A DNA stretch of 64,000 nt, from contig OZ199839.1 in NCBI GenBank assembly GCA_964304625.1, positions 10,027,201-10,091,200 on the forward strand, given 5' to 3'. The position numbers and the translations under genes were made by a program. Source of the DNA: Kudoa neothunni (Eukaryota; Animalia; Cnidaria). The notes under the pieces were generated by a model, which saw only the letters and a list, made by a program, of their open reading frames with translations, was not told the origin of the DNA and did no database searches. Positions 6,095 through 38,720 of this stretch are shown here, piece after piece (position 1 is the first letter of the stretch; each line of letters begins with the position of its first letter).

Positions 6095-9000
6095 CTAAAT
6101 GTCAGAATGAGATCTGTTTGAAAACACATATTTTATAATGAAAGCCAAAATAATCACAAACGCGATTGGGATAATAATTGCGGGAATTATTAATCTAAAA
6201 AATAAACGTCAACTATTTATAAATTATTTTACCTTAATTTCCCCCTAAAAGATAATTAAGTTCAAATATAATAAAAATCGGAACTTTGTGTTCGATTTAA
6301 TTGGACCAGATTTTTCTGTGACATCATTCGATCCATGATCAAAATTTTCTGATTTTATCAATAACACAATGAATAACATTGTAATTGGGAAATAAGCAGT
6401 ACCTTCTTCATAAATAACTGTCGATCCACGTATATTTTCATCATCTGAGTAGTAGATTGTTAAATTATAGTTAAGATGGAGATAGCCTTGCAGGTTGGTA
6501 ATAGAAAACATTTCGCATAATGGCGTGCTTTCTCCGCAATCAGATTCATCATTCCAAACACATTGTTTCAGAATTATTGAGTTTTTTAATGATTTTATGG
6601 AACTAAGCTTCCAATAACACTTTTTATCTGTTCCTCTTATATTTTTGGGGAGTAGCGCCGTAACATTTAGTTGATTTGTATACCAGCGATGTATTATGTT
6701 AATTTTTTTTGAATCTACAATAAGAACATATTAGTTAAATAAATAAACGGTTATTAATCATTAACCCTTTCTTGTACTAATTTTGTCGTGCAGTATGAAT
6801 TGAATATATCGGATGAAAATGCTTAGTTAAACCGTTAAAAAAATTAGAACTCTCACGAAAATTTTAATCAGTTATTATATCAAATTACAGGAAAAATAGT
6901 AATTAAATATAAATTGTCTCCGAATGTACTATAACTACGTAAAAATTTCTAAAGCCCTAATAAAGTATTAAACACTTATTTTCTGTTTGATTTATAAAGA
7001 ATGGCTTAATATAATCAATATGCTTATATTAGGCATTTTATTTTGTGTATTCACGCCAATTTTGATGCCAAATTCTCATTTCGAAAACTATCCCGTATAT
7101 AAAGATATTTTTAGATGTTATATTTTAATATTGTCTTATAATAGATTTCCATTCCATACCTCTAAAGTATTTAACGTTAAAACTTATAATATTTTTATAC
7201 GAAAGATAGGGTTTTAGTATATGTTTTTTCTCGCAGATTATGTAGCTTATATAACGATAAAAAATTAAATAATGACGTATCAGACAATATATAAAAATAA
7301 TCCCTATATAACTTTTTGAGTTATATATGAATATTTGTAAATAAAAAAAATTATATTTTAATTTAATCATTTATGTGATATATCTCGATTATTCATATTA
7401 ATAAATTACATTGTTTAAAAGAAAATATTTCTGTTATATCTAATTTTATTCCGGTGTCATAATAAATGTAAATATTTTTATTTTTTTTTCAATTAGGTAA
7501 AAATCATTATAACATCTAAATTATTTTGGAAAAATATTTAAAACAGTTGATCGTGAAAATGTAAACATTTCTTCTTGTCATTTAAAATTTCAATTAAATT
7601 TGACAAGAAAAGGTTAAACATATATTTCATAACATTTAATTAACCTTGTGGAACTGTTATACATGTTGTTTCCGATAATTCTATTTGAGGCTTCACACAG
7701 ATCACAAATTCTTTTGAGCCATCAAAAGGGTCAACAAACTCCATGATATCGCAAGAAGGAGGCATTGTACATGAGCTTTTTATCTCATTTGGGATTTGTG
7801 TAAAGTTCCCATTGCTGTTTAATTTCGGTTTTAAAACTGACTCATTATCGACGCAAGAATATAGTAGTTTGTATCCTCCAATATGCTCAACAAAAACGGT
7901 ATAATAACAGATGAAATCTGAGGCTATTAAGCATGGGAAATCTCCATAAATCTGACATTTTTGGGTGCGATAGCCGTGATGAAACTTTAAACCGCATTCA
8001 ACTTATTATTAAACATATTAAGTATGAAATAAATAAAATTAATGTGTGGTACTTGGAACAATGGCGGCGTTGAAGTCCATATTTATTTGAATTTTAATTT
8101 TATAGTTCAAACTAGGAACAAGCCCAAAAATTTCATATTCCTTATGACATAATCCACGGCAAGATCGGAGACCCACACATGATGCTTCGTAGTACAAATC
8201 GATTTCCATTATGCTGATGTGATAGGTACAACTAAGACTATATCTTGGATTTGGCTTCTTTTCCAGGTTTCCTTTTATTTTGTATACACCTGGTCGTTTA
8301 CCTGGAGATAAAGTAAAATTTTTACTAATGTCATATCCTTCTATTATTTTAAATATTTTGTATTGAGAAGTGAATCATATCATTGTTACTTGTTTCAAAG
8401 TATACCTTTTCAACATGTAGAATATCGTTCTGGGTACCCAACCTGATAAATATTGAGTATTTTTCGCCCTCATATAAACCAGTTATTGTTATCGGAGAAC
8501 ATACCTGTTCGCAATTTATGCTTTCTTCGCAGTTATTTACATTACCAACAATTACATTAGGCGAATCTCCCCAATATACCGTTGAATTGCAAAAAATGTA
8601 TCCAGAAATTTTTCCATTAATTTGATATCTGAATAAAGATTTATCTAATACTATACTTGAGTTTGTTATATCCGAAATAAGCCCATGAGTAAACTTTTCT
8701 CTGTCCCAGAACGCTGTAAAATTAAAAGGTAACTTGATAGAGATAAAATAAAAAATACCAAATTTCTCCTCGATATATCCAGAATTTTCCACCTCCAAGT
8801 CATGATCCTTTGTTCTTATTCTCATTTGTACAATTGGAGACAAGTCATGATAAAGTCTAATATCTTTGCATGGTGCATAACATTCTTGGTTTATTTCGCT
8901 TCCGCCACAATCAGACTTATATTCATAATTGAGTATATTCGCAGATTTACCTCTAAGACTGAAATGACATATTTCTGCCGAAAAATCATTGGTGAAAGAA

Positions 9001-9812
9001 ATAATATATTGATTCCTCACAGATAAGGCTTTGTATGCCACATTGTATTGTGGTTTAAAAATTTCTATATTAGACTTCATGTATTTGTTCGGCATAAAGT
9101 AAAAATAATTAGGTTGATATGTACAATTTATTTCAAATTGGAGAAGGTAATTGTAAATTTCGTAAATATCAAAATAGAAACCTTCGTATACATCGTCACC
9201 TACCAATTTTTTCATTCCTCTTAGTGTATCACCATAATATAACACGCAATCACCAAAAAAATATGTTTTTGCTATAATGTTTATGAAATAACCTTCAAGT
9301 TCTAGAGTTACTTGAATATTGATCAAAATAGCTAAAACTTTATGAATAAGAAACTCAAGGCGTAATTCTTACGTTTTGGAAACCCAATTATAGTTGGTTT
9401 CATTTTATTCACTTCATCACCTGCCTTCCCAATTCTAACCATGGCATATCTCGATTTTGTTGAAAGGAAATAATAGGCGTATATTCCGGTTTCACAAGAA
9501 AAATTACAATAATTCTTTAATGGAGAGATATCTTGGGGTTGGTTACATGTTTTCGTTGAAGTGGTAATTTCATCTAGGACAATTATTGAAGCAAAACAAT
9601 ATTCGGTTTCATCTATCGCGCGTTTATAATTTAAGATTAACTTTGGTTTTTCAACGCTTGTATCAATTCCATATGTAATAATTCTAATTTCATCCTGAGA
9701 ACTCAGATAAAGAATCATGTAAATGATATCTTTGTTTGAGAAATTAAAAAATATATTTATTAAAACTTTTACATAAATAAGAACACGAGGTTTGACGAAT
9801 GGTGGGTTTCAT
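6095..9812 (-). CDS. Type I membrane protein with tandem 4-Cys FN3-like modules, paralog 1 (10 exons, about 800 aa)
   Basis: Spliced model with GT-AG introns at the same positions as paralogs 2 and 3. N-terminus MKPTIRQTSCSYLYIIYMILYLSS. FN3-like motifs ITITGLYEGEKYSIFI and FGLVPSLNYKIKI. 12-nt microexon at 6233-6244. TM LIIPAIIIPIAFVIILAFII, tail KYVFSNRSHSDI*. Confidence 0.85.
6765..7613. mobile_element. Non-autonomous piggyBac-type MITE in intron 6 of paralog 1
   Basis: TTAA|CCCTTTCTTGT ... ACAAGAAAAGG|TTAA. Removing it shrinks the 930-nt intron to 77 nt, close to the 82-nt homologous intron of paralog 2. Confidence 0.8.
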
Positions 9813-16500: not shown

Positions 16501-18518
16501 AAATCTATAATATTCACTCCTATTTACGTATTTGATGATAAAAATAGATTGCAACATTTTTTTGTTGGATAAAATAGATGAAATATCAGAAACGCTTTCT
16601 TCTATATTGCAGTCCCTTCGCTACATACCCAGAGCAACTGATCACAACATGTGCCTGATATAACTTTAATAATTTTTCATTTATTCAAGATTTACTCGAT
16701 AAATTTTCCTCAAATTTTGTCAGTCGATGCTAAATTTTATTTGAGACAATTTAATCAAATAAAATAATATGATAGATTTCTAGTCCATTTTTTTGGAGGT
16801 TGTAAATTTTTCAGATACATAGAAGGTTATAGATGAAAATTATTTAGTTAATACCTATTAAGCTAAAATATGTGTTAGGAATACGATGATCATGGTTACA
16901 TTACTGTTGATCAACACATGATTTCTTTGGGATACTTAACGGAGGTCAACCTCTATAATCCAGATATAAATACAATTAGAACCAAAAATGTAACATATTC
17001 ATTCTATTCACAATCTTTTCCCGGTCTGGGACATTCAGAAATCCTATTAATGATTATATATCATTTGATATTTGTAATTGAATATTTGTTGTTTTAAAAT
17101 ATTACAAAAACTATGTGTTAGCTCGGAAAATATATTACGAAAAATAATGGTGAAATGTACATCGAATTTCCTTGTTCATTATTAGATACAAAAATTAAAA
17201 TCACCGAAGAAGAATATAAAAGCTTAAGCTTTCAAAGTTATTATGATAAAAATTTTTGGGAGCGAATAAACATTATTTCCAAATATGATTTTTCCCTATG
17301 TGTGGACATCATTTATGACGTTGCGTTTAAATCTAATATACGGCATCCATGGAATTTAAACACGGAAAAATTGCTTTCAAGTGCATTTCCACCAAAAACC
17401 GGAAGAAAAGCTTTCGATGTATACAATTATTTTATATGAATATGATCATAACGAAAGTTTCTATTTGTATATTGATTTATCATAGATATATAACTATGTG
17501 ACAGATTTTAAATTGGAAAAATATTATCGTTCATTGGATTCCATGAAATCATTAACAAACATAGCTAACCGTTATAAAGTGTATGGTGCATCCAAATCAT
17601 CGTTAACGCCAGATGAGGCCTACAAACATACAAAGGAATCGGTCGCAAGGACTTTTTCCTATGTTCTACTAGAATTTATTTCAATGTTACCATCATTTAC
17701 AGATAATGATTACGTCTTTAGGACCCATGTATGATGGCTTTATTAATAAAAACTATATAGTTTTATTCTAGGAGAATGAACTTGGTTGGCAGCCAGAATT
17801 TCTTAGTGATCACACTATGAGGAGATATTATGGACGTAAATATAAGATATCTTCAATGAATTGATTTAATTCCATTGAAAGGTGAAAAGTTCCCCAACCC
17901 TCAAGGGAATTATGGCGGACCATCCTTAAATATCCCCAATAACAGCACAAACTCAGCTGATGATAGTGAATTCGCTGAACCCTATCACGATAATTCTAGT
18001 AACCCATTTCGTCAACAAAATGAATAAACTATAAATTTTACATTAAATTATACAGAAAGCGAGACTGAGCATCAAATAGATGAGAGTCAATCAAGCTCAT
18101 CGTATTATAAACGTCCCCCAACGTCTACCATAAGTTCTGAGGGTGGAAGTAATCAAAATCTCCTTATAGAAATTATGCACGAAATTATATAGGTAGCGAA
18201 AGTGGACGTCGAACAGATGGGAGTCAATCAAGCTCATCGTATAATAAACGTCCACCAACGTCTACCATAAGTTCTGAGGGTGGAAGTAATCAAAATCTCC
18301 TTATAGAAATTATGCACGAAATTATATAGGTAGCGAAAGTGGACGTCGAACAGATGGGAGTCAATCAAGCTCATCGTATAATAAACGTCCACCAACGTCT
18401 ACCATAAGTTCTGAGGGAGGAAGTAAACAAAACCTTTAACAATGACATAATTAATGTCTCAATCACGATATTAATAATCTTTATATTCTTTATTTTATTT
18501 TTTTCTATTGTAGAATGA
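13567..18518 (+). CDS. Orphan multi-exon gene (about 620 aa), possible signal peptide, Ser-rich C-terminal repeats
   Basis: A frame-consistent chain of short GT-AG introns joins MMNILIYSMLIGYFNNILN..., DFKEDGNNSR..., EYDDHGY..., MYIEFPCS..., VTDFKLEK..., ENELGWQPEF... and three repeat exons. One about 2.2-kb intron (about 14255-16489) is filled with TE debris. The stop is at 18439 (unspliced) or 18518 (spliced). Exons near 16500-16880 are less certain. Confidence 0.7.
14322..15110 (-). mobile_element. piggyBac 3'-end fragment inside the large intron
   Basis: TTAA|CCTTCTAAG end resembles the other piggyBac ends (shared CTACCCCAA subterminal motif with 10118). Degenerate Cys-rich C-terminal remnant (FYRCCTCG). 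Confidence 0.5.
15420..16290 (+). pseudogene. hAT (Tip100/ZMYM1-like) transposase N-terminal fragment with TTF-type zinc finger
   Basis: RPTP...RTFHGVWYERK*WL...W...LNKHERSIKH matches the ZnF_TTF pattern. Contains stops and frameshifts. Confidence 0.6.
18056..18422 (+). repeat. 137-bp tandem repeat = 93-nt exon + 44-nt intron, three exon copies
   Basis: GAGTCAATCAAGCTC recurs at 18084, 18221 and 18358. Exons 18056-18148, 18193-18285, 18330-18422. Identical introns 18149-18192 and 18286-18329. Confidence 0.93.
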
Positions 18519-18659: not shown

Positions 18660-21650
18660 GTGGGTGACGGGTAATACGCAGTAAGGCTAATACGTACGTT
18701 TGCTATTCCATACAGAATTTACTACTTGTTGAACACATTACTTAAGTTGACGTTTATAAACTTAATTTAGCTGAGTTATTACACGTAAAAATAATTTCTA
18801 GGCAAAAAAAACAATAAAATATTTTAATTTAAACGCATTGTTGTGTAATACGTACCATTTTCCCTGAAATTGACCTCAAAATCGTTCGCAGGGACTATTT
18901 GATTTGTATGTGTGATTGATATAAATCTTCATAATATTCTTATAATAAATAATAAACACATAGCAATGAAAAAGTTGATGTTAATATAAAAAACTTAGTC
19001 ACATCTTTAAAAATTATGTTGTTATATTCATATTAATTTTGAATAGTAACCTACCAATGAAATTACAAATTATGGAAGTATATGAAAATGGAACTGTAAA
19101 TATTAAAAAACTGAACAAACAATGAATCTAACGAACAATCTGCGAACGGTTTGCTTGAATAAGGTCAAGTATTTCAGAGTTATTTCTCGTAGGAAATTAT
19201 TTTTAAACGTAATGAAATTGTGAAGAGAATTATGTCAAATATCTATAATGTTAATTATGGTTGGTTTAAAGAACTGTTTAATCTGGGTAGGTTAAACTTT
19301 TATAGTGATCCGAAAATCGTTGGTGAATGCACGCCTAAGAATAACTCTGAAAATTTATAAACTCGAGTCGATGTTGAAGTTTAACTAAGACAGATCCTGA
19401 TTCAATTTTGTTGCAGTTTTCTACACAGGAAATATTAAAAATAGAGAATGAAATCTTTTCGGTTGAACAGGATGGTTTATAACCACTTAAAACACATTAC
19501 ATATCGAAACAAAGACGTTGAAAAAAATTACTAAATTTTCCAGTTCTCCAAGAGACATTAGTACGTCCTATTTAGAGCCAGTTGATTAATAAGTATCTAA
19601 ATTACAAAAACCATTTAACTGTCTCAAATGCATAAAGGTATTTAAATCAAAAAATAAATAATTTATCCAAAACAAAATTATCGAAAATTATTTTCAATTC
19701 CGATCGGATCTCACACCACGAGTTGGGAATCCCTGCTTATTATTATACATTTTTCGGATATCGCGTTAATCGTGAAATCGTGATATTGTAAGAAGAATGC
19801 GTCCAATGCCTTGAAAAGTTAAACGTAAAGGTCCTCCAAAATATTCATCAAATGAGTAATTGAAAAGAAAATGTTCTATTTTTCAGATTAATTTTAAATA
19901 AAAATGAACTTTTTTAAATTACTTAAAATAAATTTCCTAATTTTTATAATTAATAGGAATTCGTAGCTGGTTCCTTGATAAAGAAATAGTTGCTAAGGTT
20001 CTGACAAGAGGAGCAATCAACGAAGAGAATGAAGTTGGGTTATTCCCTGATATTGCGAATAATGCAAAACCTAGATTCCAGATTTAACGATTAAAAAATC
20101 TATCCTTTTTTGTGAGGACTTTCTATTTAACATAAAGACTACAATAACCAACAACAAAACGAATGATTACAGATGTATCATCTGTAAGCAAACTTTAACC
20201 CTTTCACGCTTGAATTTTTATTTATCGATAAAAAGGATATATAAATTTATATAAGTAATTTGACTTAAAACCTATATTTATTTTCTTAAAATAGCTTATA
20301 ATATTTCATAAAAATGGGTATTAAATGTTGCATCGTATACCGGGCATCCGGCATTAGTGGACCGGAATTTGTGCGCACGATAGAAATCGAAAGGAATTGA
20401 ATAAAAAAAATAAAATAGTGCATAATATGTCAATTATTTTTCATTGTAATTGTAGAGGAAATTTCTAACACTCATAAGACAACGTGGAACATTTCAAACA
20501 TACTACTACTTGGGGTTTTCTTTCGAAAATTTTGCATCTTCTTGGAAATGGAGTTACTTAAGACAAGGGAATTATATTATCAAATTTTATTTTATCGGAT
20601 AAAGAAATATGTTTGTTCCTTGGTAATTTAATGTTTTCGTTGATATTGTTTGGATTTGGATTGGGATCAATATTTTGGCGGCTTCGTTTGCGAGTTTGTA
20701 TAGATAATTGGTTTTAATATAAAAATGAATCACAAATTGAGTAGGTATAGGATATCAGATCAAGAGTTTAGGGCCTTTGTGGTATTGCGTATAGATTTGA
20801 TTCGACAACAATCAATTCAAGCAGTTCATTATCGAATAACCTATTAAAATAATCGATGGGATGAGTTAACTCGTTTAAATTTTCAACATTATCATTATTT
20901 TTGGATAATTCCAGATGCAAACATACGTTGTAAAATGTATTTTCCTATGTGGTTTCTGAATTAATTTAAGAATCATCTGATGACACGCATTCTTTTCCTC
21001 CATATTTGATGATATAATCACTGGATCGTCGTCAAAATACGAATGTGGCTCAGACATGCCAGCATCAGGTATAACAATGATTTCTGAAAGTTCGTTGTTA
21101 TTTTCATTATTATTAGTCGTAATGTCACAATCCTTTGTGATCAATCTAACTCCAGTCCACGAGCGCCGGATGTCCGGTATACGGGTACGTGTTAAACATT
21201 GTATTATTTCAAAAATTATTGATCTGATCCGTTTATAAATCTATTGGTTTAATGAAATAAATTATTCACATTATTCCAAATTTTCATTTTGGTAAATCAT
21301 GAAAACTTTAGATGTTATGATCAAATTCTTTTGAATGTTGCAGTGGTATGGTGGAGCCAATTTAAATTCCTAGTTTGATGAATGTAATATTTTTTAATAA
21401 TTTTGAAATCTATTATTAAAAAACAACTCCTTTAATATATTTTACTTATATTGATCACATTAAGAAATTTCGCTTAAGTAAGTTTCTGATTTAAAGACAA
21501 ATGGCTGCTCAGTATACCACCGGACATCCTGCACGATAGGGTAAAGCATAAATGAAAAATTCGTAGGCTGTCATGTGTTTCAGTGGAGCCATTTCAAATT
21601 TGAACGAATTAAAGAGATTTCATCATCATATTATGTAAATACGATTGAAT
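18660..21650 (+). pseudogene. Decayed element or gene ending in a PHD-finger-like remnant, split by a piggyBac insertion
   Basis: Excising 20199-21545 gives in-frame YRCIICKQTLSINEKFVGCHVFQWSHFKFE (degenerate C4HC3). An upstream CxxC remnant lies near 19800. Confidence 0.4.
20199..21541 (-). mobile_element. Internally deleted piggyBac element
   Basis: TTAA|CCCTTTCACGC ... GCACGATAGGG|TAAA. Internal inverted repeats at about 20334-20366 and 21151-21183. Retains N-terminal (PIDYFNRLFDNELLELIVVESNLYA) and C-terminal (RRCKI) transposase pieces only. Confidence 0.75.
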
Positions 21651-21889: not shown

Positions 21890-24739
21890 TTATATAATCG
21901 AAATTCTATTTGATTTTGGTTTTCTTCCACATTGAAATATTATAGTAGCTGCAATAATACCGATTAAAACCAGTAAGGAGATAACCACAACGGTTATTAT
22001 TATTCTAAAAATTTAATCAAATTTACTACAAAAAAAAATCTACTTGGTCTTATTATTGTTTCTAAAATAAAATTAGATAACCTAAAATATTAAACAAAAA
22101 TACGATATAGAATCAAAAGTAACAATTGTATCATCTATTAGATAATCAAATAAGAATTAAACGGATATAACAAAATCTACCTGCTCTAAACAACGTAAAA
22201 CCATTAATATCAACGTTTTCTTTGTAGTAAACCGTTAAATTGTTCAATAAACCAAACTCTTTGATATTTCTAATAGAAAATTTATTGCATGTAGGGACAC
22301 CGTTCACACAATTCGAATTGTTCGATTTAGTACAATGCCCTATTACTGACCAACTATTTTTTCGGAAGGTTTTTAGCACCCAGTAACAGTTTGCAGCCGG
22401 AGACTTAATTTTTTTGGGAAGAATGGCAGAAACAGTTAATTGAGTTTTATCCCATAACGCGATTACATTGATTTTTTGGGGGTCTAGAAAAAATATTTAA
22501 AAAATAATATTTGTTTATAATCAAATATTAAAGTAATATTTGTAATAATTGAAATTTATAAAAACCTTGTGGAATCGTAAGACATGATGTTTCAGAGACG
22601 TCAAAGATTGATTTCACGCAGATAAGATACTCCATAGATCGATTTAAGGGATCCAAAAATTCAATGCTATCACACGCAGGAGATGTTTTACAAGACATTA
22701 TTGTTGCATGTGCGTTAGATAGAATTCTGAAGTCGCTTTCGTTTGTAGGTTTAACAATTTTATTATCATTATGGCAAATATAATTCGGTTTGAAACCACC
22801 AATATATTCTTCAAAAATGGTATATTCACACTGAAAATCTAATTTAGATTTGTATGCCACTTTTGCGTGGATTTTTATGTTAAAACCTTCGTAACTGTAT
22901 TGAAGCTCTAAGGTACCATCAACTAAAACATTTTATTTAATCCTTTAACATAAATAATTTATTTTAAATACTTGGTAATATTATTGGATCGTAATCAGAA
23001 TCAACATAAACTTTGATTTTATATTTGGCAGTAGGATAAATTCCTCTAAGAACATAATTCTTATTGCACAGCCCACGACAAGAACGATGACCATCACAGT
23101 TTGCTTCGTAGAATAAATCGCTTTCCATTTGACTTACATAGAAAACGCAAGTATATCCCTTCGCTCTATCGTTCTTAACACTAATATTTCCTCTTAGTTT
23201 AATTATTTTTGGTTCATCTACGGGTAAAATTGCAATTTGTCGACTAAAATCAACTCCAGCTATCAGTTTAAAATATTAGTAAAATCATTATTGAAAAATT
23301 TACCTGTTCGAAATGTAACTTTTTCGGTGTGCCGCATACTTCCGCCATTACTTAAATCAATCATTACGAGGTATAATATTCCGGGTTCCAAGCGTTCAAT
23401 CGTTATCTGAGTGCATAATATGTCACAATTTGTCTCCTCATCACAGATAATTTGTGCCGAAACTTTTGTCATCGGAATGTCACCTCGGTACATATTTGTA
23501 TTACAACTATCATAAATAGGACTGTCTGTTTGAGTAGGATTGTTAAATTGTGAATTATCGAGAGAAACGCTTCTTTTGGAAATTTTTGAAACTATACCTC
23601 CAAAGGTATTATCAGCAGCTACAAATACTAAATAAAATATATTTTAATTAAATAATGAGGTTAAAAGTTAATACCAAATTTTTTATCAATAAAACCAGAA
23701 CCTATTATTTGTCGGTTATGATGTCTTGTTGTTATTCTTATTTCGACAATAGGATATAAATCGTAATAAAGTCCAACCGTTCTACAGGGAGAGTAGCATT
23801 CCTTTCCTATATAACTCCCGCCACAATCAGATGTGTATTCTGTAGGTTTTTCCCCAGACACGTAATTAGCTCTTATACTGAAGTGACAAATATCAGCAGA
23901 AAAATTATTCTCAAATGATAGGAGGTAAACATATTTTCGATCCACAGCTTTATAAACCACACTATACTGTGGTCTATACATTTCTATATTAGCCCGAATG
24001 TATTGGTTCGGCATATAATAATAGAAACTAGGTTTGTTTGAGCATTTAACCTCAAAATGTTCGATCAATAAATAGATCTCCACATGATGATACAGTTCAT
24101 CTTTGTGGGCATTAGAAGTATCAGATTTTTTCATATTCTCAACTTTATCGTTGTAATGTATTTCACAGTTACCAATTTCGTGTGTATCTGTGGTGACCAA
24201 AATATATATGTAATGATGTTCGATAGTTGTTCTCACCTTTAAATCGAACAAAATTGCTATAATAATTTTGAATACTTTATTTCTATAATTATTACAGACT
24301 TACGTGTCTCAAAACCAATTATATGCAAGCTTTCATCTGAACTTGTGTCACCTTCTGAAATTCTAACTGAGGCGTATTTTGAGTTCTTATCAACAAATTT
24401 ATATGCATATATTCCACTATCACATGTGAAATTGCAATAATTATGCGGGGAAATATCTTCCACCAATAAACATGTTCGTTCGCTACTGAGAATTTCGTCT
24501 GGAACAAGTATAGAACTCCAGCATTGTTCATTTGCTCCTGTGGAGCTAGTCACATTGAGTGTAATTTTAGGAGGAGATACTTCATGGTTAATATCATAGG
24601 TGAATTTTCTTGAATTAGCATCAAAACTGTTGCAACACGTTTGAGCGATGATATCTTTATATTATTAAACAAATCAGAGCAATATTTATTATATATTACA
24701 AATAATAATAGTAAATGTATGATAATTAATAATTTTCAT
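21890..24739 (-). CDS. Type I membrane protein with tandem 4-Cys FN3-like modules, paralog 2 (802 aa, 10 exons)
   Basis: Exons 24739-24700, 24654-24304, 24256-23675, 23627-23304, 23259-22972, 22922-22566, 22483-22181, 22134-22104, 22061-22044, 22004-21890 (2409 nt, open). Signal-like MKIINYHTFTIIIYIIAQTCCNS. FN3 motifs ITIERLEPGILYLVMI and YVLRGIYPTAKYKIKV. TM IIITVVVISLLVLIGIIAATIIF, tail QCGRKPKSNRISII*. Confidence 0.9.
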
Positions 24740-25020
24740 TCCTTTATTTTATTACGCCTGATACATCAAATGACGATATTGTTCCCTTCTATATAGCAAT
24801 TTATACTCAAGTAATTAAATAAGCGATTTATTCGATAATCTAATACATTTTAATGAGTTATATCTAATCCTTACGTAATTTTCTGAAATATGTTCAGTTA
24901 ATATATTTATATCATTTCGACACACATAAAAAATATTTATTTAATATTCGATACATGAATTTGCAGTTTTTACACCCTCACATTATAGTTTATTTTCCCT
25001 TATTATAAATATTGAATAAT
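24240..25020. repeat. Near-identical duplicated block (copy at 36946-37726) covering exon 2, exon 1 and 280 bp upstream of paralogs 2 and 3
   Basis: Constant offset of 12706. By eye, differences occur only inside exon 2 (about 8 nt). Confidence 0.92.
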
Positions 25021-26339
25021 TCTATTTGTCTATCAATAAATTAATAATATTAGGTTAAAATGATCGTTACTGGTGAATTTAGCTAAAATAGAAATTTAGT
25101 TTTGTGATCTGATAATTACTCTCCATAGAGATATTAATATATTTTATGGGTTGTATTTAATATCATTAAACTACGAAAATATTAAGGATAATTAAAATTA
25201 TTAAGAATCTTAAATTTATATTTTTAATTTACTATATCTATTTGCAACCAAAATTTTTTTATTAAATTATGAAATACGAAGTCCTTGAAACGCAAGCTCG
25301 AGAGCAAGCGAAGGAGTTGTTTTCAAATTAAATTCAGAAAAAGTATCTCATGTTTTTACAAATTTTCCGCAAAAACCAACATTTGTAATTATAGTAAATA
25401 TAAATTATAATAATACAAATAAATCAATGACAAATATGTACAGTAGATGAATAATGGAATAGATCCTTTTGATAACCATTGTGCACCTTCGAATTACACC
25501 AAAAGCTCGATATAGTGTGATAAATGGTGACTCGGGTTTTACGACGGTATGACAAATCACCATCTTATATCGATTCACGCGCAAATGCATCAGAGTAAAC
25601 ATTTTTAATGGACATATATCATTGAATTTTACCTTTTTATTGAAATTAATACATTTAATTTATCCATAAATGAATTAAATAATTATAGTTATTTATGGCG
25701 TTTATGAGAAGAGAACTTTAACGGATAACTATCGTAATTTTTTCAGCGGCTAAAAAGAATTTCGATAAAATTAATCTCTATGATCTTAATATTTTAGTAC
25801 TTTAAATTAAAATAATTTTATTATTATGAATTATTTCAATTTCATAACTAATTTGCAACACTCTCGGTTATATGATCTAGTTATTATCCATAAAATAAAT
25901 ATATTAAATTGTTGGACAAAGGATGACTTTAAATATACAAATAGCTTAGCTTATGCAATAAATTGTAATAATAAATCCAAATTTTTCATATTATACCTTT
26001 TAAATATATGCATGATTATTTGTAACATTATAATAACTGATGGTACTCCACTTGACTTCAAAATCATTGATAATATAATGAAATAGTTTTAAATATAAAT
26101 TGACTATTTTTATCAAAAAGAAGCTGTGTGAAAAAATACTGTTTGTGATTGGTCTTCGAACTCCCGCACATAATAATGTCTTTGTTGAAATAGATGTTAA
26201 TTTACAGTATATGTGACCAGCATTCGGCAACGAATACAAAACATCTTAAAATTTTAAGAATTATAATTCGTTAATAAAAACTTAAATAAGATGTTAATTT
26301 CTTTTCCCTTATATTTTATTTTGTATACGAAATAGGATG

Positions 26340-34586: not shown

Positions 34587-34701
34587 TTAGATAATCAGGA
34601 AATTTCTTAGATTTCAGTTATATCGAATAATTATAACTGCTTAGCTGGAATAACGCTAATGGTAACCAATAATGAATAACTCCATTGCGATAATTATTGT
34701 T
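34587..34701 (-). pseudogene. Decayed transmembrane/tail exon of paralog 3
   Basis: Same length (115 nt) and similar ending (ATT ATC TAA vs ATT ATA TAA) as exon 10 of paralog 2, but with compensating frameshifts and in-frame TAG, TAA and TGA. The TM remnant LLVTISVIPA is out of frame. Confidence 0.75.
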
Positions 34702-34745
34702 CTAAATTATTAATTAAATTTTTTCCAACCAGAAATATACTTGAT

Positions 34746-37445
34746 TTAATCATCGTTGCTAAACAATCGGATAAATAACTCAAAATATTAAAAAATTACT
34801 AATTAGGGTCTATAATAAGAAGTTGATCTTCCACTAAATTATCAAATTAAAATTGATTAGATACAGTAAAATGTACTTATTCTAAATAATGTAAAACCAT
34901 TAATATCAACATTTTCTTTGTAGTAAACTGTGAAATTATACATGAACCCGACTTCATTGATGTTGCCAATGGAAATATTATTACATCTCGGGACAACATG
35001 CTCACAATTCAAATCGTTTGATTTAGTACACTGCCCTTTTATAAACCAACTATCTTTTCGTACGATTCTCATCTTCCAATAACATGTTGCTTCAGGAGAG
35101 ATAATTGCTTTGGGGAGTATGGCAGACACAGTTAGTTGGTTATTATTCCATAAAGGTATTACATTTATTTTTTTGGTATCTAGAAAAAATTTTTAAAAAA
35201 TAATAAATTATAATACTTGTTAATAATAAAATATTAAAGTAATATTCGTGATAATAGAAATTTATGAAAACCTTGTGGAATCGTGAGACATGTTGTTTCC
35301 GAGACATCAAAGATTGATTTCACGCAGATAAGATACTCCTTAGATGGATCCAAAAGATCGGTCAATTCGACGCTATCACACCTTGGAAGCCAACAGCATG
35401 AATTGATTATTTCATCTGTAGTAGAAAGTATGTGAAAATTGCTGGAGTTATTTGGTTTAATAATTTGTTCATTATTAAAGCAGGTAGTGAATAATTTGAA
35501 ACCACCTATATATTCTTCAAAAATGGTATATTCACACTGAAAATCTAATTTAGATTTGTATGCCACTTTTGCGTGGATTTTTATGTTAAAACCTTCGTAA
35601 CTGTATTGAAGCTCTAAGGTACCATCAACTAAAACATTTTATTTAATCCCTTAATATAAATAAATTATTTTAAATACTTGGTAATATTATTGGATCGTAA
35701 TCAGAATCAACATAAACTTTGATTTTATATTTGGCAGTAGGATAAATTCCTCTAAGAATATAATTCTTATTGCACAGCCCACGACAAGAACGATGACCAT
35801 CACAGTTTGCTTCGTAGAATAAATCGCTTTCCGTTAGACTTACATAGAAAGCGCAAGTATACCTCCTTGTTGTGTCTTTCAGATCAAAGATATGCCCCAA
35901 TAGATTAATCTTATTTGGTATTTCTACGGGTAAAATTATAATTTGTCGACTAAAATCAACTCCAGCTATCAGTTTAAAATATTAGTAAAATCGTTATTGA
36001 AAAATTTACCTGTTCGAAATGTAACTTTTTCGGTGTGCCGCATACTTCCGCCATTACTTAAATCAATCAATACGAGGTATAATATTCCGGGTTCCAAACG
36101 TTCAATCGTTATCTGAGTGCATAATGTGTCACAATTTGTCTCCTCATCACAGGAAACTTCAGCTGAAACTATTGCCATCCGAGTATCACCTCGGTATACA
36201 TTTGTAAAACATCTGTCATAAATAGGGCTGTCTCTTTGAATAGGATTGCTAAATTGTGAATTATCGAGAGAAACGCTTCTTTTGGAAATTTTTGAAACTA
36301 TACCTCCAAAGGTATTATCAGCAGCTACAAATACTAAATAAAATATATTTTAATTAAATAATGAGGTTAAAAGTTAATACCAAATTTTTTATCAATAAAA
36401 CCAGAACCTATTATTTGTCGGTTATGATGTCTTGTTGTTATTCTTATTTCGACAATAGGATATAAATCGTAATAAAGTCCAACCGTTCTACAGGGAGAGT
36501 AGCATTCCTTTCCTATATAACTCCCGCCACAATCAGATGTGTATTCTGTAGGTTTTTCCCCAGACGCGTAATTAGCTCTTATACTGAAGTGACAAATATC
36601 AGCAGAAAAATTATTCTCAAATGATAGGAGGTAAACATATTTTCCATCCACAGCTTTATAAGCCACACTATACTGTGGTCTATACATTTCTATATTAGCC
36701 CGCATGTATTGGTTCGGCATGTAATAATAGAAACTAGGTTTGTTTGTGCATTTAACTTCAAAATGTTCGATCAAAAAATTGATCTCAACATGATAATACA
36801 GTTCATCTTCATAGGCACTAGGAGTACCAGATTTTTTCATTTTCTCAATTTTATCTTTGTAATGTATTTCACAGTTGCCTATTTCACGTGTACCTGTGGT
36901 TACAGATACAAATATGGAATTTTGGACAAACATTGTCGTGACCAATAAATCGAACAAAATTGCTATAATAATTTTGAATACTTTATTTCTATAATTATTA
37001 CAGACTTACGTGTCTCAAAACCAATTATATGCAAGCTTTCATCTGAACTTGTGTCACCTTCTGAAATTCTAACTAAGGCGTATTTTGAGTTCTTATCAAC
37101 AAATTTATATGCATATATTCCACTATCACATGTGAAATTGCAATAATTATGCGGGGAAATATCTCCCACCAATAAGCATGTTCTTCCAAAACTGAGAATT
37201 TCGTCTGGAACAAGTATAGAACTCCAGCATTGTTCATTTGCTCCTGTGGAGCTAGTCACATTGAGTGTAATTTTAGGAGGAGATACTTCATGGTTAATAT
37301 CATAGGTGAATTTTCTTGAATTAGCATCAAAACTGTTGCAACACGTTTGAGCGATGATATCTTTATATTATTAAACAAATCAGAGCAATATTTATTATAT
37401 ATTACAAATAATAATAGTAAATGTATGATAATTAATAATTTTCAT
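34746..37445 (-). CDS. Paralog 3: intact 4-Cys FN3-like ectodomain, predicted secreted (no TM)
   Basis: Same exon layout as paralog 2, and ectodomain exons are open. The 18-nt microexon 34741-34758 reads C AAC GAT GAT TAA, ending the protein at ...DPNYNDD* before the TM exon. Confidence 0.85.
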
Positions 37446-38720
37446 TCCTTTATTTTATTACGCCTGATACATCAAATGACGATATTGTTCCCTTCTATAT
37501 AGCAATTTATACTCAAGTAATTAAATAAGCGATTTATTCGATAATCTAATACATTTTAATGAGTTATATCTAATCCTTACGTAATTTTCTGAAATATGTT
37601 CAGTTAATATATTTATATCATTTCGACACACATAAAAAATATTTATTTAATATTCGATACATGAATTTGCAGTTTTTACACCCTCACATTATAGTTTATT
37701 TTCCCTTATTATAAATATTGAATAATACCATTCTTTCATTATGTATTTAATTTCAATGTGTTGAAATGGTAATATCTAATGAATTTAACCGATACTATAT
37801 CTGACTTTATGACTGGATTAATATTCTCTTTAGAGATATTTATATTTATTATGAGCTTCTATCCAGTATCATTAAATTACGAGAATATTAAAACATATTT
37901 TAATTATTAAGATCATTTCTTTATAATCATTTTTAGTCTTTACTATCTGCAAAAAATTCTATACATTCGTAATCATGAAATTTTGTTATTATTTACTAAA
38001 TTAATAATTCCTTTTTACGTAAATTTGCTAATTAAATACTATAAAATTTCTCATTATTACCAATGGATTAAATAATTCGGTAATTGATAAAGTGCTGGTT
38101 TTATATTATTTTTTAATGTAATTAATACAAATAAAAAAATAATTTGGTCACGTTATGATGACCAGCTTGTACAATGTTGAAAAATATCAATATCTCTGAT
38201 AATTGATTTTCAAGAAATTAAAAATCAAGTTATTCCCTAAGTAGTATTTTCAAATATACAGTTCAGTTAATAATTTCAAATACAACGATATCCTTTTTCA
38301 ATAAAAAGTAAAGATCCCGCTTCGATTACCTTCAGCAAAAGTTTTTGCGAAATAGCAAGTATAAGGAACGGTAATATTCTGTTAAATCCTATTTGACGAT
38401 ATTTAACTATTTCTGCCCCAATTACACTTTCTTATGGAGTAAAAAATTTATTATTTTTTCATATTCTCGAAAAATAAATAGCTATATTGACTATAATTGA
38501 ATTTGGGTACAGCTTTACCATCGATGTCTGATTTTATCTTGTATATCCTATTTTGTCCTATTTTCCCTGTCCTTCCATTCAATAGGCCAATAATCTCAAA
38601 AAGGGTTTCAAAATTGAGGAGCATCCGCATATACCACAAACAAAGAAATATAACCATAGTAGATTTTATTTCGTAAACTATTTAAATTAGTATCTTTTAT
38701 TTAATGAAGTGTTTTATTAA

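Follow-up and report, generated by a model that had tools for sequence, protein, structure and literature searches.

The window analysed here is a 64,000-nt stretch of contig OZ199839.1 of Kudoa neothunni, in which two members of a gene family, paralog 2 and paralog 3, lie in tandem and in the same orientation. Paralog 2 (21890..24739, minus strand) is predicted to be a complete gene, consisting of a signal-peptide exon (E1, 24739-24700), six module exons – E2 (24654-24304), E3 (24256-23675), E4 (23627-23304), E5 (23259-22972), E6 (22922-22566) and E7 (22483-22181) – a microexon of 31 nt (22134-22104), and a TM exon (22004-21890) encoding a 23-residue hydrophobic span followed by a short basic tail. 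In this gene model, introns I2 through I7 share phase 1. Paralog 3 (34587..37445, minus strand; offset +12706) has the same exon layout, with E1-E7 open. If the splice sites of paralog 2 are assumed, its microexon/TM-exon junction is a stop and its TM exon is frameshifted; judged from its sequence, paralog 3 seems to have no membrane anchor. No RNA run was found among the listed sequence runs that hold the paralog stretch. The two genes are separated by 12.7 kb, and both the 9.4-kb spacer and the outer flanks are unrelated. A recent 12.7-kb tandem duplication was rejected as the origin of the pair, since the homology spans only ∼3.3 kb.

The first-pass annotation had described introns that are more conserved between the two genes than their exons, and the pairwise alignment agrees with this. 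Introns I1, I2 and I3 are identical, while I4 contains one difference and I5 three, which gives 4/232 nt (0.017) for introns 1-5. The exons differ at 8 (E2), 45 (E3), 24 (E4), 32 (E5) and 70 (E6) positions, and no indels were found in the alignment between 24950 and 22566. In E3, 25 amino-acid differences fall within residues 1-73 and 4 within residues 74-193, matching the earlier counts of about 25 substitutions in about 73 aa of one module and 4 in the next. The variable peptides quoted previously from both genes were found as given. The retention of the module cysteines also held: every cysteine of paralog 2 is present in paralog 3, and E6 of the latter carries one additional Cys.

The differences are clustered far beyond chance, as revealed by a two-state HMM (1.4% vs 30.7% mismatch; lnL -1031.6, compared to -1298.5 under a single rate). 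The strongly divergent coding patches reported earlier were thereby recovered as five islands of 15-171 nt each, with ∼30% mismatch. Together they occupy 22% of a span of ∼2.5 kb, reaching from -281 to exon 6, in which the mismatch outside the islands is 1.4%. All five islands are exonic; this avoidance of non-coding sequence is weakly significant (P=0.036 for all non-coding DNA and 0.10 for introns 1-5 alone).

The order of these segments, followed along the minus strand in paralog 2 coordinates, is as follows. An old unconverted 5' flank (25021..25240) shows 63% identity to paralog 3, and the homology stops at ∼25235. At the edge 25020/25021 the identity changes abruptly, falling from 100% to 63% beyond -281. 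Tract c1 (24485..25020) comprises the promoter from -281, E1, I1 and the initial half of E2; with 0 differences in 536 nt it is the longest perfect run of the pair, and it includes 281 nt of promoter that are 100% identical. The segments from island a to island e were delimited by the HMM. Island a (24470..24484, in E2; counterpart in paralog 3, 37176-37190) carries 6 differences in 15 nt, and is followed by tract c2 (24240..24469; remainder of E2, I2 and the start of E3) with 2 differences in 230 nt. Island b (24069..24239, E3 residues 6-62; counterpart 36775-36945) shows 77.8% identity, and tract c3 (23544..24068; the second FN3-like domain of E3, I3 and the start of E4) has 7 differences in 525 nt. 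Island c (23447..23543, in E4; counterpart 36153-36249) shows 78.4% identity, and tract c4 (23234..23446; the end of E4, I4 and the start of E5) has 4 differences in 213 nt. Island d (23127..23233, E5 residues 9-44; counterpart 35833-35939) shows 71% identity, and tract c5 (22789..23126; the remainder of E5, I5 and the start of E6) has 5 differences in 338 nt. Island e (22634..22788, E6 residues 45-96; counterpart 35340-35494) shows 58% identity. The last short tract of low divergence, c6 (22551..22633; the end of E6 and the start of I6), has 5 differences in 83 nt, and the second edge lies at ∼22550. It is followed by an old unconverted 3' part (21940..22550; I6, E7, I7, microexon, I8 and TM exon) with 72% identity, introns included. 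The span of paralog 3 holding the five island counterparts (35340..37190, minus strand) is offset by +12706. Tract c1 (0/536) was found to be significantly younger than the remaining tracts (p=7e-4), indicating that conversion happened repeatedly.

The age of the islands was examined at silent sites. At codons for identical amino acids, silent changes were present in 25/103 cases within the islands (24%) and in 6/421 outside them (1.4%; Fisher p=4.5e-14), that is ∼17 times more commonly within the islands; the corresponding value for the unconverted exon 7 is 19/61 (31%). The dS values, estimated by the Nei-Gojobori method and rough near saturation in this 30% GC genome, were 0.55 in the islands, 0.66 in exon 7 (dN 0.21) and 0.023 outside the islands, a 24-fold excess of island dS over the latter. 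The pS of the islands did not differ from that of exon 7 (p=0.53). The ratio of transitions to transversions was 77:84 in the islands, 109:126 in the old flanks and 15:8 in the converted tracts. The islands are old divergence and not freshly mutated sequence. Protein constraint was rejected as the cause of the near identity around them, because this extends to introns, promoter and silent sites.

The pair belongs to a family of at least 300 copies, which are predicted to be FN3-like type I membrane proteins and are organized in tandem arrays. The mosaic structure recurs in other pairs of the family: L024 and L035 are 89% identical in a blastn alignment and share a perfect run of 1137 nt, and in most of ten further pairs conversion has left the N-terminal part of the E3 exon untouched. 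The local subfamily, at C2:9.96-10.07 Mb, comprises about ten genes. For paralogs 2 and 3, the islands fall on the most variable columns of the family (mean conservation 0.44 vs 0.58; block-permutation p=1.4e-4). According to fold predictions, which like all searches were run exon by exon, the E3 and E6 products are FN3-type beta-sandwiches. The top 50 structural matches of the E6 model (pLDDT 77.6, pTM 0.76) are mostly FN3 domains; the comparison with gp130 D4-6 gave Z 8.5 and an rmsd of 2.5 A over 86 residues. The E3 model (pLDDT 70) contains two sandwiches and matches tandem-FN3 and cytokine-receptor structures. The Z values of 7-8.6 obtained for structural matches denote a shared common fold only. 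In these models, island b corresponds to the strands at the N terminus of the first E3 beta-sandwich, its hypervariable core lying on the first hairpin, while island e forms an excursion of the FN3-like domain of E6 that is long, irregular and stapled by disulfides and lies between core strands.

Pfam searches with six exon products returned nothing beyond chance level at E<=1 and no fn3 match, and a 27-sequence profile had no match among PDB sequences. A word-indexed protein search with the E3 product, limited by its length window, found no match, fragments included, and the ESM Atlas feature search gave no usable match. A HMMER profile search of 1.84 billion representatives retrieved only 17 exon-sized fragments, all unnamed singletons from ENA and Logan assemblies. 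Two of these are only 42-52% identical to copies in the Kudoa neothunni genome, and therefore come from other organisms.

The two genes are old paralogs, and the conversion tracts are sharp-edged. We regard it as quite probable that these old tandem paralogs underwent recent gene conversion over ∼2.5 kb and that the islands are old sequence left unconverted. According to this explanation, paralogs 2 and 3 are old tandem duplicates with a silent divergence of ∼0.6, and interlocus gene conversion, in at least two events, would recently have replaced ∼2.5 kb in one of them by sequence of the other. The replaced stretch would begin 281 nt ahead of the ATG and reach the end of exon 6, which would have made the promoter, the first five introns and the conserved portions of the exons nearly identical. 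Five short exonic stretches would have escaped the overwriting, their retained divergence appearing as "hypervariable patches"; at about even odds, they persist because selection removed conversion products that homogenised these functionally diverged surface segments. The segmental gene conversion invoked in the first-pass annotation is strongly supported, but with its role reversed: it homogenised introns, promoter and conserved exon parts, and did not shuffle variable cassettes into the patches, no donor having been found for either gene or for the two largest islands.

Why the islands have persisted is a separate question. Judged from position alone, selection against homogenisation on the one hand, and chance or patchy repair of heteroduplex DNA on the other, appear about equally likely. 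The proposed selection on binding surfaces did not hold as diversification by point substitutions; in a weaker form, as selection against homogenisation, it fits the location of the islands on family-variable columns. Paralog 3, with its anchor seemingly absent, may be decaying, in which case selection on its islands becomes doubtful. With no change in the assumed age of the paralogs or in the conversion, the islands of the mosaic could also have been left by chance: there may have been several short tracts that arose independently, mismatch repair of one heteroduplex may have been patchy, or the stretches with most mismatches may have been rejected, and no selection would preserve the islands. 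We consider this purely neutral course possible and rather doubtful. It is consistent with the small share of the converted span that the islands occupy (just 22%), with an avoidance of introns that is weakly significant at best, and with an island dN/dS below 1; moreover, patchy repair along a single long heteroduplex could suffice to produce islands in the absence of selection, and islands e, d and b have cores (58-65% identity) whose divergence somewhat exceeds that of the old introns. However, it does not account readily for the overlap of the islands with family-variable columns (p=1.4e-4), for the N-terminal part of the E3 exon remaining unconverted in most of the ten other pairs, or for a 15-nt island persisting next to a perfect tract of 536 nt. 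Introns of comparable old divergence did get converted, and homology-limited conversion was therefore rejected as a sufficient cause; it remains a partial rival. As the islands (58-78%) and the old introns (68-80%) overlap in identity, this limitation is neither clearly supported nor excluded.

The remaining explanations start from recent duplicates or question the assembly. Patches might have been copied into the two genes from elsewhere in the family, as happens in antigenic variation with silent donor cassettes, and the hundreds of copies in tandem arrays and the pervasive conversion in the family would favour this. However, a whole-genome DNA search of the 40-Mb assembly revealed no third-party donor for either gene, nor, in separate queries with both copies, for islands b and e (islands a, c and d were covered through the whole-gene queries). 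The nearest other paralogs reach 41-44% protein identity, the islands of paralogs 2 and 3 being mutual closest relatives. The islands also show no length differences, their silent divergence equals that of the flanks, and the old 5' and 3' flanks argue against a recent duplicate; cassette import is accordingly very improbable. Diversifying selection or targeted hypermutation, acting through point substitutions in the binding-surface patches of recent duplicates, deserves hardly any credence. The patches do occupy regions of FN3-like modules that are variable and in part loop-like, and island d has the highest dN/dS of the five (1.13). This value is not significantly above 1 (p=1.0), nor is that of any other island, and the overall island dN/dS of 0.55 is significantly below 1 (p=0.003). 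The excess of silent changes (24% vs 1.4%), a patch dS far above that outside (0.023) and in the introns (0.017), and a mutational spectrum equal to that of the old flanks all oppose it, and no sign was found of a patch-aimed mutator also hitting silent sites, which could rescue hypermutation. High dS in the patches, together with the lack of matching donor paralogs and of further alleles in the contigs, is the result that the first-pass annotation had itself named as refuting; judged by it, both diversifying selection and cassette shuffling fail. As regards variation, the contigs were assembled independently from four runs, all of one sample; only the letters of paralog 2 and paralog 3 occur in them, at low depth and with rare variants dropped by contig building. 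False identity through collapse, chimerism or haplotypic duplication has a virtually negligible probability. The published assembly was made from low HiFi coverage recovered from host data, with haplotypic duplication purged (PMC12239612), and the independent contigs leave the islands unlinked to one another. Nevertheless, 12.7 kb separate the two copies, neither the spacer nor the outer flanks are related, and both versions of every tested difference, and nothing else, are present in the contigs, the islands at approximately half the depth of the shared stretches (word depth ∼10 vs 4-5.6 in the islands and the paralog 2 private flank, X1; a ratio of ∼2:1). A phase switch across identical stretches would leave the mosaic pattern unchanged. 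All reads come from one sample, the same as the probable source of the assembly, and the whole analysis concerns one genome of that sample.

The case corrects a tempting misreading, as introns more conserved than exons do not here signify positive selection or antigen cassettes. As a mechanism it belongs to textbook molecular evolution, and the general understanding of paralogs is unchanged. The divergence peaks mark, at the residue level, the parts most likely to be relevant to function: the first hairpin of the first E3 sandwich, the N-terminal portions of E4 and E5 and, in E6, the stapled loop. The FN3-like family of at least 300 copies is undescribed. Gene families and surface proteins are absent from the text of the published genome paper, and the 45% "repeats" that it gives may include members of the family (PMC12239612). 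For a 40-Mb parasite genome with ∼5,300 annotated genes, the case adds evidence for hundreds of unannotated, actively recombining genes of predicted surface proteins. A speculative and, in our estimation, unlikely extension is that the family constitutes an undescribed myxozoan variant surface repertoire, in which conversion would keep scaffolds and promoters uniform, selection would keep exposed FN3 segments different, and anchor-less copies such as paralog 3 would be secreted or serve as sequence reservoirs. If so, it would provide a panel of host-facing surfaces for the parasite; and should the family be exposed to the fish host, it would offer a starting point for work on myxozoan persistence in tissue.

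Among known systems, FN3 and cytokine-receptor-like ectodomains share with this family the predicted FN3-type folds of E3 and E6 and the arrangement of one module per phase 1-1 exon that is typical of them. In contrast to them, the exon products have no Pfam fn3 or PDB sequence match, and they carry additional conserved cysteines and, in E6, the long stapled excursion. Snake-venom PLA2 and other toxin genes undergo accelerated evolution, with exons diverging faster than introns, so that introns are more conserved than exons between paralogs, as observed here. In toxin genes the excess divergence is exon-wide and driven by nonsynonymous change, whereas in the Kudoa pair it is confined to old islands, and the conversion tracts have their edges in non-coding DNA at both ends.

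Genes resembling VSPs, RIFINs and STEVORs have been claimed for another myxozoan, Sphaerospora molnari (bioRxiv 10.64898/2026.02.11.705288). Like the variant surface repertoires of parasites, the Kudoa family is found in a parasite, is very large, combines signal peptide and TM segment with many cysteines, and is arranged in clustered arrays with ectopic recombination among members. However, its fold is FN3-like and unlike that of CXXC-rich VSPs, no sequence relation to them was found, and nothing in the genomic data points to switching, to mutually exclusive expression or to donor cassettes. Large clustered families with frequent interlocus conversion are also represented by MHC, R genes and immunoglobulin V pseudogenes (PMC3924837), and in immune and recognition families, too, the variable segments lie on exposed parts of beta-sandwich domains. 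Those families import diversity from identifiable donors and show dN > dS at contact residues, while for the Kudoa pair no donors were found and dN/dS is <1.

The pattern in the Kudoa pair matches the "peak of divergence", which has been described as a mark that selection leaves where gene conversion is active (PMC3924837 section 3.2). In the primate L/M opsin tandem paralogs, conversion homogenises the introns and selection keeps the exon differences, so that introns are more alike than exons (PMC3213168). The Kudoa pair differs from the opsins in that one partner, paralog 3, seems to be without a membrane anchor. It has five peaks over five exons of a multi-module ectodomain, compared to one functional cluster in the opsins. 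In both cases, tandem paralogs of the same orientation have introns more alike than exons, and sharp peaks of old divergence, with silent sites diverged as well, stand out from a homogenised background.

Paralogs 2 and 3, neighbouring copies of a surface-protein gene, share the same orientation and lie 12,706 nt apart. Their homology extends over only ~3.3 kb (21946-25235 vs 34642-37946), and the 9.4 kb separating them is unrelated sequence. The observation of the first-pass annotation that the introns of the two copies are more alike than the exons is real. Their alignment, which contains no indels between 24950 and 22566, shows introns 1-3 to be identical, with a single difference in intron 4 and three in intron 5, against 8, 45, 24, 32 and 70 differences in exons E2 to E6, respectively. 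The earlier counts for E3 (25 of its first 73 residues changed, against 4 of the other 120) and the quoted peptides were exact, and the module cysteines are kept in both copies, with one additional Cys in paralog 3.

The paralog 2 gene (minus strand) opens with a signal-peptide exon; phase-1 introns connect its six module exons (95-193 codons each), and a 31-nt microexon and a transmembrane (TM) exon close the gene. Its GT-AG introns are short (44-92 nt). The last exon encodes a 23-residue hydrophobic span and a short basic tail, and the predicted product is a type I membrane protein. When the 3' end of paralog 3 (34587-34833, minus strand) is read with the paralog 2 splice sites, the final TA of its 34-nt microexon and the initial A of the exon that follows create a stop at the junction; the TM exon, in an indel-shifted frame, encodes only 14 residues before a stop. 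Paralog 3 thus probably lacks a membrane anchor, and since E1-E7 have an open reading frame, its product may be a secreted ectodomain, or the gene may be decaying from its 3' end.

A two-state HMM run on the alignment (states with 1.4% and 30.7% mismatch) was strongly favoured over a one-rate model (lnL -1031.6 vs -1298.5). Along the minus strand, it separated an old 5' flank (25240-25021, 63% identity), six low-divergence tracts (25020 to 22551, 1,925 nt in total), five divergent exon islands, a-e (24484-24470, 24239-24069, 23543-23447, 23233-23127 and 22788-22634), and an old 3' part including introns 6-8 (22550 to 21940, 72% identity). The upstream edge is abrupt: the 281 nt preceding the ATG are identical, and identity beyond them is ~65%. 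Abrupt edges and diverged sequence at both ends indicate that the paralogs are old duplicates whose central 2.5 kb was homogenised recently. With 0 differences over its 536 nt, the tract nearest the 5' end is significantly younger than the rest (p=7e-4), which requires more than one conversion event.

The stretch is present in four public sequencing runs of one sample. Contigs built independently from these runs end at 25020 and wherever an island begins or ends, because the word graph must split where two copies share identical stretches, and every one of the 16 "other letters" in the contigs is that of paralog 3. Word depth in one run was 4-5.6 in private stretches (islands, paralog 2 flank) and 9.6-11.2 in shared ones. 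The reads are consistent with a pair of genuine copies and with no additional alleles. As the assembly probably derives from this very sample, the contigs provide no independent support; they do not phase the islands, and a phase switch would leave the mosaic pattern unchanged.

Diversifying selection on the patches had been proposed, but the silent sites of the islands are as diverged as those of the unconverted exon 7. Nei-Gojobori dS and dN were 0.55 and 0.31 in the islands, 0.023 and 0.010 outside them, and 0.66 and 0.21 in exon 7; with divergence near saturation in an AT-rich genome, such codon statistics are approximate. When the count was limited to codons with the same amino acid in both copies, which sidesteps multi-hit codons, the islands differed silently at 25/103 codons, the sequence outside them at 6/421 (Fisher p=4.5e-14) and exon 7 at 19/61. 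pS did not differ between islands and exon 7 (p=0.53), and pN was slightly higher in the islands (odds ratio 1.5, p=0.036). Transition:transversion counts were 77:84 in islands, 109:126 in old flanks and 15:8 in converted tracts. These four agreeing results (dS/dN, silent codons, pS and ts:tv) show that the islands are remnants of old divergence and did not arise by recent substitution. Island dN/dS was 0.55, below 1 at p=0.003, and the highest single value was 1.13 (island d, p=1.0).

The other process proposed, conversion shuffling variable cassettes into the patches, is likewise unsupported. Whole-genome DNA searches that used each gene, and islands b and e from each copy, as queries returned just the two loci and 65-77% paralog matches to conserved module parts, with no donor locus. 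Beyond this pair, the closest family members share 41-44% identity in the product of E3, and within the islands paralogs 2 and 3 are each other's nearest relatives. The leaning of that first interpretation towards antigenic variation found no support in the tests proposed with it.

Searches and folds were run exon by exon. No exon product matched Pfam or, by sequence, the PDB. In AlphaFold models made from family alignments, E3 forms two beta-sandwiches (pLDDT 70) with structural matches to tandem-FN3 and cytokine-receptor proteins, and E6 a single FN3-type sandwich (pLDDT 77.6, pTM 0.76; Z 8.5 and rmsd 2.5 A over 86 residues against gp130 D4-6); for both models, the Z values indicate a common fold only. 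Island b would map to the N-terminal strands of the first E3 sandwich, with its core at the first hairpin, and island e to 48 irregular residues that connect core strands of E6 and include conserved cysteines. Candidate copies of the E3 exon number at least 328, spread over all three large contigs, and 150/150 scored copies had E below 1e-23. Among 1.84 billion representatives, a profile search gave 17 fragments only. Exon-sized family fragments occur in two other public data sets (L041 and L043 in SRR33849685, L042 in ERZ28624939), and a fragment from another organism used as query gave 671 candidates in the genome. The two external fragments checked are just 42-52% identical to their best copies here, which places the family in at least one other, related organism.

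The published K. neothunni assembly, recovered from yellowfin tuna data, comprises 40.2 Mb in three chromosomes and a mitochondrion, with 30.4% GC, a median intron of 49 bp, 5,316 predicted proteins and 45.6% repeats; the genome paper makes no mention of gene families or surface proteins (PMC12239612). The assembly searched (G000) has 40.26 Mb in 4 contigs, and the window shows 23-36% GC per 2-kb window and introns of ~45-49 nt. Paralogs 1-3 belong to an array of ~10 members, all on the minus strand (G000 C2:9.965-10.065 Mb, loci L003-L020, including window 7640-9330); one member, L020 (C2:9963703-9967131), is broken by a masked stretch (N). Same-strand clusters are frequent, e.g., at C1:16.3-16.9 Mb, C2:9.79-9.87 Mb and C3:9.75-9.86 Mb. 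Just downstream of the paralog 2 region, a 137-nt unit occurs in three tandem copies (18030-18440, 81-87% identity). A short open frame (20771-20944, minus strand) weakly resembles the beginning of PF13843, the profile for piggyBac-type transposases (17.3 bits, below the cut-off of 22.4), and is probably what is left of a decayed transposon lying among the family genes. Dispersed spacer repeats of 69-76% identity (26477-26747/2142-2415; 34105-34374/58731-58998/6983-7109) are probably old mobile-element debris.

Why the islands persist was considered using per-exon alignments with six to nine other paralogs per exon. Island columns are less conserved than the rest (0.44 vs 0.58), a value equalled in 0.014% of random placements of same-size blocks. 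That all islands are clear of non-coding DNA is marginal (P=0.036; introns alone 0.10). Identity ranges of old introns and flanks (63-80%) and islands (58-78%) overlap, so poor homology is no obvious reason for converted introns beside unconverted islands. Ten other family pairs show the same alternation of ~1% and ~30% segments (L024/L035, L024/L027, L029/L030 and L022/L023 among them), with the N-terminal part of E3 usually unconverted. Several pairs, 82-91% identical by blastn, share perfect runs of hundreds of nt, the longest being 1137 nt (L024/L035); in the subfamily of the pairs named, the membrane-proximal modules, encoded in the ~1 kb downstream of E4, have nearly always been homogenised, and the distal ones still differ. 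For this one genome and one sample, with gene models and products predicted from DNA, selection against homogenisation of the islands and a neutral patchy mosaic that happened to leave them appear about equally probable.

An already known process, here at work in a large parasite gene family that is new and so far undescribed, explains the pattern. The mosaic matches the "peak of divergence" of duplicated genes under conversion, a signature in which selection limits conversion at the sites of functional divergence between the copies (PMC3924837, section 3.2); the L/M opsins of gibbons and humans are the textbook example of introns that are more similar than the exons (PMC3213168).
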